Below are positions 36,360 through 40,778 of a stretch of 64,000 bases of DNA, piece by piece. The stretch covers positions 1 to 64,000 of the forward strand of contig CDROCS010006605.1 in assembly GCA_977020255.1 (NCBI GenBank), read 5' to 3'. The position numbers were made by a program, and so were the translations under genes. Source of the DNA: Obrimoposthia wandeli (taxonomy: Eukaryota). The notes below the pieces were generated by a model. That model saw nothing but the letters and a program-made list of their open reading frames with translations, had not been told where the DNA came from and made no database searches. Positions within the stretch are counted from its first letter, which is position 1; the number at the start of each line of letters is the position of its first letter.

Positions 36360-37244
36360 ATGAGTTCATTGAAAAACAAAACCATCATCATCACAGGCGC
36401 TAGCCGTGGTATCGGTCGTGAAGTGGCGTTAGCGTGTGCTGCTGAAGGTGCAAATATTGTGATCGCGGCGAAGTCGGATCAGCCGCATCCAAAGTTGGAA
36501 GGCACGATTCATTCTGTAGTGAAAGAAGTTGAAGAGGCTGGCGGTAAAGGCCTAGCCGTTAAGGTTGATGTGCGCAGTGAAGAAGACATTGATAACCTAA
36601 TTGCTAAAACGGTTGAAACCTTTGGTGGCATCGATGCAATTATTAATAATGCGGGTGCGATTGCTTTGGCGGGTGTTGAATCAACACCGCTGAAGAAACT
36701 TGATTTGATGATGCAGGTGAATTTCCGTGCTGTTTTCTTATTAAGCCAGAAAGCATTGCCGTATTTGAAAAAATCAGAAAATGGTCACATCTTAAGTTTC
36801 TCTCCGCCGTTAGATTTAGATCGTCGCTGGATGCGTAACCACTCGCCGTACACATTAACTAAGTACGGCATGTCGATGTTGACTATGGGGATGTCGGATG
36901 AATTTAAGCGTTATGGCATTGCGGTAAATGCGCTATGGCCTCGCACAGTTATTCATACCGCCGCGACGTCTTTTGGTGGTAAGCAATCCTTTGATCGCGC
37001 TCGTGGCCCTAAAATTATGGCGGATGCGGCGTTTGCACTGTTGAAAACTGAAAACCGTGCAATCACTGGGCAGTTGTTAATAGACGAAGATTTCTTACGT
37101 ACTCAGGGGGTGGAAGACTTCGAACAGTATCGTGCGAATCCTGAAAGTGATAAAACAGATTTGATGCCTGATTTGTTTGTACAAGACGCTGATGCTTATG
37201 TTCGTGGTACAGTGCCTCCTTTAGCGGGTTTGATTGACGAATAA
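36360..37244 (+). CDS. atuG: Short-chain dehydrogenase (AtuG/HSDL2-like)
   Basis: TGASRGIG, NNAG and YTLTKYGMSM motifs; follows atuF. Confidence 0.75.
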   Translation: MSSLKNKTIIITGASRGIGREVALACAAEGANIVIAAKSDQPHPKLEGTIHSVVKEVEEAGGKGLAVKVDVRSEEDIDNLIAKTVETFGGIDAIINNAGAIALAGVESTPLKKLDLMMQVNFRAVFLLSQKALPYLKKSENGHILSFSPPLDLDRRWMRNHSPYTLTKYGMSMLTMGMSDEFKRYGIAVNALWPRTVIHTAATSFGGKQSFDRARGPKIMADAAFALLKTENRAITGQLLIDEDFLRTQGVEDFEQYRANPESDKTDLMPDLFVQDADAYVRGTVPPLAGLIDE

Positions 37245-37258
37245 AAGCTTAAAGAAGG

Positions 37259-37376
37259 TTAACCACAGAGGCACAGAGAAGAGCGGAGAAAAGAAGGGCA
37301 ATAATTAGCTGAAGGACAAAGAGATATTGTCATTTTTTATTTACCTTTTTTCTTTTCTCTGTGCCTCTGTGGTGAA
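37259..37376. repeat. Inverted pair of 20-bp CACAGAG repeats (locus 2)
   Basis: TTAACCACAGAGGCACAGAG (37259-37278) and CTCTGTGCCTCTGTGGTGAA (37357-37376). Confidence 0.88.
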
Positions 37377-37410
37377 TGTCTTTCCTTTTAAAGCATTGAC
37401 TGAAAGAGAA

Positions 37411-38133
37411 ATGAATATGTCTTTAATGAGTTTACGCAACGAAGGTAAGGTTGCGATTATTTCCATGGATAATGGCAAGAACGCCAATAACCTTGAGTTT
37501 GCCCAGCAGCTTTTAGGCTTGTTAAAACAAGTCGAAGAAGAAAAAAGCAATAAAGCCCTTATCCTGACTTCAAGTGATGAAAAGAACTGGAGTCAAGGTA
37601 TTGATGTACCTTGGATGATGGGCAGCATTCAGGGTGGCAAGCACGACGATGTAAAAGAATTTTTGCATACTATGGATGCGTGTTATACCGCGATGATGCA
37701 ATACCCTATGCCTATTATTGCAGCGATTAATGGTCATACTTTCGGCAATGGTGGTGTTATCGCCTGTGCTTGTGATTTCCGTTTTATGCGTTCTGATCGT
37801 GGATTTTTCTGCTTCCCAGAAGTCGATATGAGTGTGCCATTTTTGCCAGGCTTGATCGATGTGATTTTAAAAGCGATGCCAATATATCGTTTTAATGAAA
37901 TGATTCTTTCAGGACGCCGTCTATCGGCCGAAGAGTTAAAAGAAGATAAGGTTGTCGATCAGATATTCGATGGCGCTGATGCTTTGTTTGAAGGCGCTTT
38001 AGCGTATGCAAAAACCTTTACCAAGGGACGCGCAATTTTTTCTGAACACAAACGTCGCTTACATAAATCTGCGATCGATGCTTTAGCAGAGAAAAATCCG
38101 CCTATGATTGATGCGATGAAAGTATTGTTGTAA
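37411..38133 (+). CDS. Enoyl-CoA hydratase/isomerase family protein (track start 37327 runs through the repeat; ATG 37411 or 37417 likely)
   Basis: WSQGID, AAINGHTFGNG and FCFPEVD crotonase motifs. Confidence 0.85.
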   Translation: MNMSLMSLRNEGKVAIISMDNGKNANNLEFAQQLLGLLKQVEEEKSNKALILTSSDEKNWSQGIDVPWMMGSIQGGKHDDVKEFLHTMDACYTAMMQYPMPIIAAINGHTFGNGGVIACACDFRFMRSDRGFFCFPEVDMSVPFLPGLIDVILKAMPIYRFNEMILSGRRLSAEELKEDKVVDQIFDGADALFEGALAYAKTFTKGRAIFSEHKRRLHKSAIDALAEKNPPMIDAMKVLL

Positions 38134-38379
38134 TACTATTCTTCTAATCGTCAGGCATCCCTGCTTTCTTACCCTTTAGAAGGTAGGGTTTTAGTTCACC
38201 AGTAAGAGACAGCACATTATTCCAAAAGTGGTATTCACCTTTAGGCACTCAGATGATACTTCTCCACATCCCATTTCCAGTTGTCCAATCACCCATATAA
38301 TTCTATTTTTCCTATCGGTAAATCGATCTTTATCATCTTGATTCTCGTTGATATTGCTATTTTGTAGGCTTAAATCAAG

Positions 38380-38684
38380 TTACTAACAAGATCTGTGCAT
38401 AAGTATGGGTATAAAATATTTATAACAGGCTGTAGCCCTTATAGAATCGCTCATTGAGTTAGATTGTTGCTTTTTCGAACAATTGTTTGAATTGCTTTAA
38501 AGCCAGTAAAGTCAATGGTTTAGCTGTCTTTTTCAGAAAAATAATAGCTGTGGAAAAAGTTATAAATATTTTTGTTTTTCTTCATTACAAGACTTGTTTT
38601 TAGAAAAAATAAACGTTATTTAAAGAATGTGGCGCGAGTTATCATAATTGTATCCACAGATGTTGTGGATAAGTGTAGGGATAA
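38380..38684. promoter_or_regulatory. Cluster of DnaA boxes, DARS-like
   Basis: GTATCCACA (38650-58), TGTGGATAA (38664-72, perfect), TAGGGATAA (38676-84), TGTGCATAA (38394-402), TGGGTATAA (38406-14), TGTGGAAAA (38549-57). Confidence 0.7.
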
Positions 38685-38885
38685 CTAATAGCATAACTTT
38701 ATATCTCCAACTCTTATCCTAGTCCTGCGTAGATATTTCTTCAGCGACCTTAGATTGTACTTTTTTTAATCAGGCAATCAGTTTTACTTTCGGCTAAGTA
38801 GTTAATAAATTATCTGGTAAGATAGGCGCATATAACTTCAAGCTTTACCAAACTTTTTTGTCGCTTCTATTAATTAGGCCATTCC

Positions 38886-39131
38886 ATGAAACTATTAGTC
38901 CGTAACCTTGCCCGTTCTCTTTCTGAAGAAGATGTAGCGGCTTTATTTGCCCCCTTTGGTGAAGTTGCAGAATGCAGCTTAGTGATGGATTCACAAACTG
39001 GTGAATCGAAGGGTTTTGGTTTTATTGAGATGCCTGGGCCGGGTAATGGCAAAGCGGCGATGAAGTCACTGAATGCGACAGAAATTGCTGGCCAAGTTAT
39101 CCGTGTAAAGCGTGCAGCAGAAGATAAATAA
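38886..39131 (+). CDS. RRM-domain RNA-binding protein
   Basis: RNP2 (LLVRNL) and RNP1 (KGFGFIEM). Confidence 0.9.
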   Translation: MKLLVRNLARSLSEEDVAALFAPFGEVAECSLVMDSQTGESKGFGFIEMPGPGNGKAAMKSLNATEIAGQVIRVKRAAEDK

Positions 39132-39176: not shown

Positions 39177-40778
39177 ATGTCTGAACGCAAATCTAAGGCT
39201 AAAGCCACGGACAACAACATAAACGAACAGGCTGAACCAGAAAAACAAGCCTCATTAGTTAAGTCTTCCAGTATTGTCAGCATTATGACGTTATTGAGTC
39301 GCGTATTGGGGCTGGTGCGTGACGTGGTGGTGGCGCAGTATTTTGGTGCCCGTGCGGATGCCTTTTTTGTGGCGTTTAAAATTCCCAATTTTTTACGCCG
39401 CTTGTTTGCCGAAGGCGCATTTTCCGTCGCCTTCGTCCCTGTTCTTTCCGAATACAAGACGCAGCGCAGTGTCGCCGAAGTTAAGATGCTGATTGCCAGT
39501 GTTTCTGGGGTTTTGGGCTTAATACTGTTTTTAGTCACGGTTATTGCGCTGCTCTTAGCGCCTTGGTTGCCGTATGTGTTTGCTCCAGGCTTCAGTGGTG
39601 ATGCTGAAAAATTTGCCTTAACCGGTAATTTGTTAAGAATTACTTTCCCGTATTTATTATTTATTTCCCTTACCGCGTTCGCGGGCAGTATCTTAAATGC
39701 CTATGGCCGTTTTGCGGTGCCTGCGTTTACGCCAGTCTTATTGAACGTTTGCCTGATCTTCTCTACCTTGGTGATGACAAGCTGGTTTATTGAGCCTTTA
39801 TACGCCTTAGCGTGGGGCGTATTCATGGCGGGGGCGCTTCAATTACTGTTCCAGTTACCGTTCATTGCGCGCTTAGGCTTGTTGGTACGCCCGACTTATC
39901 AGCCTAAACAGGAAGGTGTGGGGCGTATTCTGAGATTAATGGGACCTGCATTATTTGGGGTTTCTGTTAGTCAGATTAATTTATTACTCGATACTTTATT
40001 AGCCTCTTTCTTAGAACCGGGCAGTGTCAGTTGGTTATATTATTCTGACCGCTTGAATAACTTGCCGTTAGGTATCTTTGCAATCGCGATTGGTGTGGTG
40101 ATTTTACCGGCGCTGTCGAGAAAGCATGCTGAAGATAATTCAGAGCACTTTGCGCAAACCCTAGATTGGGCAACGCGGATGATCTTCTTATTAGCCTTGC
40201 CAGCTGCCTTGGCTTTAGTCGTATTGGCAACGCCATTAATGGCGACGATCTTTTTCCACGGTGAAATTACTCCGTACGATATTGGAAAAATGACATTAAG
40301 CCTGCAAGCTTATGGAACTGGGCTGTTTGCCTTTATGTTGATTAAGGTGTTGGCGCCAGGCTATTACGCCCGCCAAGATACTAAAACTCCAGTGAAAATC
40401 GGTATTCAAGCCATGGTTGTTAATATGGTTTTGAACCTTGCATTAGTTGGTCCGTTTCAGCATGCAGGTTTGGCATTAGCGACTTCGTTATCCGCATTCT
40501 TCAACGCTTATATGCTTTACAGAGGATTGAAAGCGACGGGGCATTACAAAGCGCAACCCGGTTGGCCTGTCTTTGCGCTGAAAGTATTAATCGCCAATGT
40601 CGCGTTGTTTGCGGTGATGTATTTAATGATGGGCGATGCCCAGCAATGGTTAGAGTGGGGTACTTGGCAGCGCATTGGCTGGATGTCGGCAATTGTCGGC
40701 GCGGGCGTAAGTATTTATTTCATCACCTTGTTGGTTTTTGGATTAAGGCCTAGGCATTTAAAAGGGGCTAGCTTTTAA
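39177..40778 (+). CDS. murJ: Lipid II flippase MurJ (MviN)
   Basis: TLLSRVLGLVRD, FKIPNFLRRLFAEGAF and LAPGYYARQDTKTPVK. Confidence 0.96.
   Translation: MSERKSKAKATDNNINEQAEPEKQASLVKSSSIVSIMTLLSRVLGLVRDVVVAQYFGARADAFFVAFKIPNFLRRLFAEGAFSVAFVPVLSEYKTQRSVAEVKMLIASVSGVLGLILFLVTVIALLLAPWLPYVFAPGFSGDAEKFALTGNLLRITFPYLLFISLTAFAGSILNAYGRFAVPAFTPVLLNVCLIFSTLVMTSWFIEPLYALAWGVFMAGALQLLFQLPFIARLGLLVRPTYQPKQEGVGRILRLMGPALFGVSVSQINLLLDTLLASFLEPGSVSWLYYSDRLNNLPLGIFAIAIGVVILPALSRKHAEDNSEHFAQTLDWATRMIFLLALPAALALVVLATPLMATIFFHGEITPYDIGKMTLSLQAYGTGLFAFMLIKVLAPGYYARQDTKTPVKIGIQAMVVNMVLNLALVGPFQHAGLALATSLSAFFNAYMLYRGLKATGHYKAQPGWPVFALKVLIANVALFAVMYLMMGDAQQWLEWGTWQRIGWMSAIVGAGVSIYFITLLVFGLRPRHLKGASF

Follow-up and report, generated by a model that had tools for sequence, protein, structure and literature searches.

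A 752-bp gap separates the end of an enoyl-CoA hydratase-family gene (at 38133) from a gene for an RRM-type RNA-binding protein (38886–39131) in the window, which is the whole 64,000-nucleotide stretch of DNA analyzed here. Downstream of the RRM gene come murJ, ribF, and ileS, in that order, and the flanking genes all lie on the plus strand. The gap had been described as free of open reading frames, and our scan agreed: an ORF of 40 aa or longer is absent from 38134 to 38844. The gap holds a conserved noncoding element with two DnaA-box cores, laid out as follows (window coordinates; features without an assigned strand are given as unstranded):

38159–38198, plus strand: intrinsic terminator-like hairpin with a T-run, ending the enoyl-CoA hydratase gene; it lies outside the conserved element and marks the left limit of the gap
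38376–38830, plus strand: the whole conserved noncoding element (two cores, the blocks between them, and a promoter-proximal part), recovered by blastn, alignments, and profile search
38380–38425, plus strand: core 1, with box I TTACTAACA (38380–38388, forward), spacer AGATC, box II TGTGCATAA (38394–38402, inverted, fitting TTATNCACA), spacer GTA, box III TGGGTATAA (38406–38414), and, at 2-bp spacing, a candidate box III′ TATTTATAA (38417–38425)
38459–38493, unstranded: near-invariant 35-bp block with an 18-bp near-palindrome centered on AATT, from the alignment of relatives
38510–38522, plus strand: IHF-like site AGTCAATGGTTTA, one mismatch to WATCARNNNNTTR, at +130 from the start of core 1
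38549–38557, minus strand: lone DnaA box TGTGGAAAA (TTTTCCACA on the minus strand), at +169 from the start of core 1
38584–38602, unstranded: conserved block with the palindrome ACAAG-A-CTTGT and then a T-run, also recognizable in the topB paralog
38639–38696, plus strand: core 2, five boxes, with weak box I′ TTATCATAA (38639–38647), box I GTATCCACA (38650–38658, plus strand), spacer GATGT, box II TGTGGATAA (38664–38672, inverted), spacer GTG, box III TAGGGATAA (38676–38684), and box III′ ATAGCATAA (38688–38696)
38750–38775, unstranded: AGATTG-N4-T-run motif, second copy, ~100 bp downstream of where core 2 starts
38815–38823, plus strand: extended −10 element TG-n-TAAGAT (TCTGGTAAGAT), conserved in all relatives
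38886–39131, plus strand: gene for an RRM-type RNA-binding protein of 81 aa (Pfam RRM_1, 4.6e-17)
39177–40778, plus strand: murJ (Pfam MurJ, 4.3e-138)

The extended −10 element is probably part of the promoter of the RRM gene. Expression data came from public runs and consisted of contigs of relatives only; these metatranscriptome contigs cover the RRM gene from about 38851, and over 38367–38518 their depth is only 2–5, which may be DNA carry-over and is uninformative about a small RNA. Farther upstream, between a short-chain dehydrogenase gene and the enoyl-CoA hydratase gene, lies a long near-perfect hairpin (37240–37395; −59.2 kcal/mol, z = −7.3), for which Rfam returned only weak, microRNA-precursor look-alike matches.

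The contig carrying the window (C6605) belongs to an Oleispira species within a 1.35-Gb multi-organism assembly of 6912 contigs. The MurJ encoded in the window is 88–94% identical to MurJ of metagenome-assembled Oleispira genomes. Given the many bacterial dnaA genes in the assembly (at least 20), we take it to represent a host together with its microbes. Contig C6451 (28732–32208) comes from another, more distant Oleispira-like bacterium and has the same intergenic element at 73% identity.

DnaA-box cores and their distance from the origin

The initial annotation had reported a main triad of DnaA boxes at 38650–38684 with its first box opposed to the others, a second, degenerate triad at 38380–38414, and a lone box at 38549, all of which were recovered from the sequence. 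Both triads have the same 9-5-9-3-9 geometry, with box I opposite to boxes II and III, and core 2 starts at +270 from the start of core 1. Box II fits the full consensus TT[A/T]TNCACA in both cores; the triad of core 1 is the weaker one (two mismatches in its box I), and the sequences at the box III positions are degenerate. Together, boxes I and II make up a perfect 8-bp inverted repeat, a potential hairpin, and the ATAA ends of boxes II, III, and III′ of core 2 repeat with a 12-bp period. Two one-mismatch IHF-like sites had also been proposed. The one at 38510–38522 (plus strand) is 95% conserved and recurs in paralogous elements, and the one at 38373–38385 is unconserved among relatives.

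One-mismatch DnaA boxes number 26 in the 64-kb window (vs. 16.8 ± 4.4 in shuffles), and five of these fall within 38260–38672. Under a loose definition, inverted pairs with a 5-bp spacer occur twice in the window, both times in the element upstream of murJ, where Markov simulation predicts about 0.4 per 64 kb (equivalent to 27 per 4.4 Mb). At this chance rate the first triad would be unremarkable by itself, and it gains weight from its conservation and position.

The locus had been placed far from dnaA and oriC, which GC skew and a complete Oleispira genome (4,406,383 bp) bear out. Skew in the window is positive to the left and to the right of the gap (0.19, 0.04, and 0.15 in three 2-kb bins). 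In the complete genome, the element is found at 636,258–636,7xx, 636 kb from dnaA/oriC; dnaA occupies position 1, and the rpmH-dnaA region before it contains three full-consensus boxes. Sampled GC skew of that genome is above zero between 0.1 and 1.9 Mb and below zero between 2.1 and ~4.1 Mb, and dnaA and the box-rich rpmH-dnaA region sit at the switch. Its position relative to dnaA and the skew puts the element at about one-third of the length of one replichore from the origin. In the assembly, the dnaA genes that were found are on contigs other than that of the window, with the one closest to the DnaA of the complete relative on contig C1564. That the element is itself oriC is ruled out by the window skew, which does not change sign, by the sampled skew of the relative, and by the position of dnaA.

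Conservation and paralogous loci

Whether the element is retained upstream of the RRM gene and murJ in relatives had been proposed as a check, and the boxes proved to be conserved genus-wide while the spacers drift. The element (38376–38830) is conserved in 14 Oleispira-like genomes (13 other loci found by blastn; MAFFT alignment), with a mean identity to the window of 0.78, vs. 35% for the upstream DNA between the terminator and 38375, so that conservation starts sharply at ~38376. Over the 14 genomes, identity to the window is 82–96% in the boxes (0.89–0.96 in core 1 and 0.82–0.96 in core 2) and 55–63% in the spacers; in core 2, the 5-bp spacer has an identity of 0.63 and the 3-bp spacer 0.55, with both lengths fixed. 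The 9-5-9-3-9 spacing is exact in both cores in all 14 relatives. Boxes I and II of core 2 are invariant except at the first base of box I and at one G/A position, and in box II of core 1 most of the variation falls on the free N of TTATNCACA (TGTG[C/G/T]ATAA).

Other parts of the element are conserved as well. The most conserved part is the block at 38459–38493, which exceeds the DnaA boxes and is explained by neither DnaA nor IHF; the IHF-like site at 38510–38522, the block at 38584–38602, and the extended −10 at 38815–38823 are also invariant. The lone box (38549–38557) is conserved in closer relatives only (0.66). In contrast to this genus-wide retention, the element was absent from the position upstream of murJ in 21 loci of Thalassolituus, Bacterioplanoides, Oceanobacter, and others. 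The copy upstream of murJ is confined to Oleispira and is therefore probably a genus-level duplicate.

The locus proved not to be a single one: it is one of about five paralogous loci, of a family that reaches other genera. A strict pattern matched seven sites in the complete Oleispira genome vs. none in the reversed control. These sites fall into five loci (166 kb, 636 kb, 3.232 Mb, 3.528 Mb, and 3.750 Mb), of which the 166-kb locus has one core and the other four have two cores each, 200–331 bp apart, giving up to nine cores across the five loci. The same loci with the same intercore spacing recur in four other Oleispira genomes. A profile built from the element upstream of murJ matched the topB locus over both cores and everything between them (E = 7e-24), the 3.232-Mb locus (E = 7.5e-11), and the 166-kb locus (E = 8e-8); the best background match in 400 kb of sampled sequence had E = 0.88. 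The topB paralog (L075:3958–4645, at 3.528 Mb) is the closest one and is located between the divergent genes topB (topoisomerase III) and ndpA/yejK (a nucleoid-associated protein), both chromosome-structure genes.

In the wider family, the strict pattern was present in all 41 sampled genomes, with 2–9 matches each vs. 0–2 in controls. When the distance between the inverted boxes was left free from 0 to 20 bp in five family genomes, 15 of the 17 sites had exactly 5 bp. Beside a pseudouridine synthase gene, Oleispira, Thalassolituus, and Bacterioplanoides share a syntenic two-core element (L074:3926–4291, L108:2991–3325, and L107:2819–3183); its cores are 300–331 bp apart, and each of the three genera has an IHF-like site at +119 to +121. 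All seven two-core elements examined, like E. coli DARS2, have an IHF-like site on the same strand at +109 to +130 (+130 also in the topB paralog, +119 to +122 in the remaining two-core elements), a recurrence to be read with the caveat that one-mismatch IHF-like matches are common in AT-rich DNA. A lone full box occurs at +202/+203 in two other genera, and the AGATTG-N4-T-run part of the 38459–38493 block recurs ~80–100 bp past most cores in the paralogs. Consensus scans for Fis sites gave no full match in the window element and nothing consistent overall: the 38459–38493 block of the window matches the Fis consensus poorly, with a full match at the same offset (+86) in two paralogs.

Comparison with DARS, datA, and other DnaA-box systems

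In DARS, the published spacer between boxes I and II is 5 bp, an arrangement needed for ADP release (PMC6868365). Comparison with the E. coli DARS cores, which had been suggested as a check and which we carried out on the MG1655 sequence, gave the same 9-5-9-3-9 spacing with box I inverted. The DARS1 core reads TTATCCACT-5-TGTGGATAA-3-TGTGTATTA and the DARS2 core TTATTCACC-5-TGTGGATAG-3-TGTGAAGAA, so that both are identical in geometry and box orientation to both Oleispira cores. DARS1, upstream of uvrB, shares with the Oleispira cores a full-consensus box II and a degenerate III′, the latter being the additional box known to follow its box III (PMC6868365), but it differs in being one 101-bp core that works without accessory proteins.

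The layout of the Oleispira element resembles that of DARS2 more than DARS1, in its core, IHF-like site, lone box, and second core. DARS2, upstream of mutH, is likewise intergenic and far from oriC. It requires IHF binding at a set distance from the core and Fis sites (FBS2-3) adjoining a DnaA box. Counted from where the core starts, its two IHF sites are 13-mers at +93 and +109, and they coincide with the published IBS1-2 in their 3-bp separation and in adjoining a PciI site. The match at +109 (AGTCAATGCATTA) is nearly identical to, and on the same strand as, AGTCAATGGTTTA at +130 in the window. The lone box V of DARS2 is at +211, compared with +169 in the window, and a second inverted pair, TTATCCCAG-5-TGTGGATAA, is at +316/+330, compared with a second core at +200 to +331 in Oleispira. 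This second pair (MG1655 ~2,969,451–2,969,473) mirrors the two-core layout and coincides with a published DnaA ChIP peak. The Oleispira element differs from DARS2 in its neighbors and in occupying about five loci instead of one, and sequence homology beyond the boxes is not detectable. In a profile search against DARS1 and DARS2, only the cores matched (E ~0.3, not significant), so the likeness to the E. coli elements could be convergent. Published DARS2 homologs come only from near relatives of E. coli, Vibrio and Shewanella among them. We rejected positional orthology with DARS1 or DARS2, because no core lies upstream of uvrB and mutH is absent from the genome.

E. coli datA resembles the Oleispira element as a noncoding DnaA-box cluster with an IHF site, situated away from oriC. 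However, its layout (tandem boxes 7-2, IHF site, box 3) differs from both Oleispira cores, and its only inverted pair has a 3-bp spacer, a pair with a 5-bp spacer being absent. Bacillus subtilis has several intergenic DnaA-box clusters over the origin-proximal chromosome that act by titration; it belongs to a different phylum, and we know of no description of these clusters with an inverted 5-bp pair. At the "double box" promoter sites of E. coli, a tandem spacing of 2–3 bp is needed for stable DnaA binding (PMC11317965). Boxes II, III, and III′ of Oleispira share this arrangement, but the "double box" sites are single tandem pairs, at the nrdA, polA, and purH promoters, without an inverted partner.

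The proteins that would act at such sites are also present. DnaA of the complete Oleispira genome is 64% identical to E. coli DnaA, and DnaA of contig C1564 is 87.6% identical to that of the complete relative. Both keep Q208, V211, L214, Q215, F239, K243, D269, R285, and L290, among them the residues needed for DARS action (Gln208, Leu290, and Asp269), and both keep the box-reading residues R399, P423, D433, H434, T435, and H439. Oleispira also encodes an Hda-like protein of 235 aa and, at 62% identity, a homolog of Fis.

Proposed function, alternatives, and significance

We think it somewhat probable, judging from box geometry, conservation, and the retained DnaA residues, that the element is a chromosomal DARS-type cis-element, i.e., a DnaA-reactivating sequence. 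The initial annotation had offered a DnaA-reactivating or a datA-like element; the first of these fits the sequence features of DARS that could be tested, and the second fits less well, datA being without the 5-bp inverted pair. Of the refuting outcomes named in that annotation, the two that sequence can decide, a GC-skew origin at the locus and unconserved boxes, were both contradicted. We infer that DnaA binds the Oleispira element and releases ADP there. By analogy with E. coli, ADP-DnaA would bind the full-consensus box II, and partner molecules would be recruited across the 5-bp spacer to box I, which is inverted, and to boxes III and III′, which follow in tandem at 2–3 bp. A head-to-head contact of AAA+ domains on boxes I and II, involving Gln208, would loosen ADP, and the empty DnaA would drop off and rebind ATP, enlarging the pool of initiation-competent ATP-DnaA. 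Bending by IHF would probably modulate the activity of the element.

The main rival to the DARS reading is a role opposite in effect, in which the element restrains initiation either as a DnaA sink, by titration as in B. subtilis, or by datA-like ATP hydrolysis with IHF. Five loci with up to nine cores, vs. two DARS in E. coli, would also suit titration, as would the many high-affinity boxes at these loci, which in the complete relative are all in the origin-proximal halves of the replichores; the conserved IHF-like site between the clusters and the 2–3-bp tandem spacing, which favors cooperative DnaA binding, point the same way. However, the family is defined by inverted boxes exactly 5 bp apart, an arrangement that DARS has and datA lacks, and simple titration does not require so sharp a spacer preference. 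We regard titration or a datA-like role as unlikely. The promoter-proximal position of core 2 (~130 bp upstream of the conserved extended −10) raises another reading, namely that DnaA controls transcription of the RRM gene and the murJ operon, with core 2 tuning the promoter at 38815–38823 to the replication cycle. A role in transcription is possible because the murJ and topB copies are each ~200 bp upstream of a codirectional gene, the topB paralog being at the same distance from its gene, and E. coli DnaA is known to regulate promoters through paired boxes (PMC11317965). Yet the remaining paralogs face converging or diverging genes, and this difference in neighbor orientation argues against a purely promoter-linked role. 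The element is, moreover, 450 bp long, with its other core 440 bp from the promoter, and only one genus has the element upstream of murJ, whereas its family extends further. Transcriptional control as the function of the element seems quite improbable.

A reading without DnaA, as a structured small RNA or long 5′ leader, as the site of another palindrome-binding protein, or as a chance cluster, is in our judgment very improbable. It could draw on the 8-bp inverted repeat of boxes I and II, which could form a hairpin, on the low-depth metatranscriptome contigs that touch 38367–38518, and on the fact that the most conserved block (38459–38493) is not a DnaA box. The repeat is, however, a canonical DnaA box, and box II of core 1 varies at the free N position. 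A structured RNA was rejected for want of an Rfam family and of covariation: the Rfam search returned no match, and RNAalifold gave a weak consensus fold with a covariation term of +0.3 and compensatory changes in 2 of 45 pairs. A chance cluster is excluded by the conservation and the controls.

If the DARS reading is followed, the element is a strong candidate, on the strength of its sequence, for a replication-timing element outside the close relatives of E. coli. To our knowledge, DARS are the only known DNA sites that recharge a bacterial initiator; we are aware of experimental study of them only in E. coli, and of reported sequence homologs only in its close relatives, at the uvrB and mutH positions. 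What is new here is the presence of five loci, the preference for a 5-bp spacer, the family-wide occurrence, the offset of the IHF-like site, and the retained DnaA residues together with the Fis homolog and the Hda-like gene. Inverted DnaA boxes exactly 5 bp apart, followed by tandem boxes, provide a simple genomic signature for such elements.

Oleispira antarctica has a complete genome, and the genus is marine, oil-degrading, and cultivable. The Oleispira modules would offer an independent system for testing the generality of ADP release by head-to-head DnaA dimers, and could be used to test whether initiation timing is set by the number of copies and by how far they lie from the origin, and whether the layout of two cores plus IHF is the ancestral form of DARS2. 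A more tentative and rather doubtful extension is that the family of Oleispira, which lacks Dam-directed MutH, runs a multi-site network of DnaA nucleotide exchange with four to five paralogous DARS2-like two-core modules on each chromosome, in which the copy next to the pseudouridine synthase gene, common to several genera, would be ancient. E. coli DARS2, whose second inverted pair at +316/+330 has drawn little notice, would be the single survivor of this older two-core plan. If this is true, DARS would be an ancestral and expandable feature of the gammaproteobacteria rather than a peculiarity of enteric bacteria and Vibrio.
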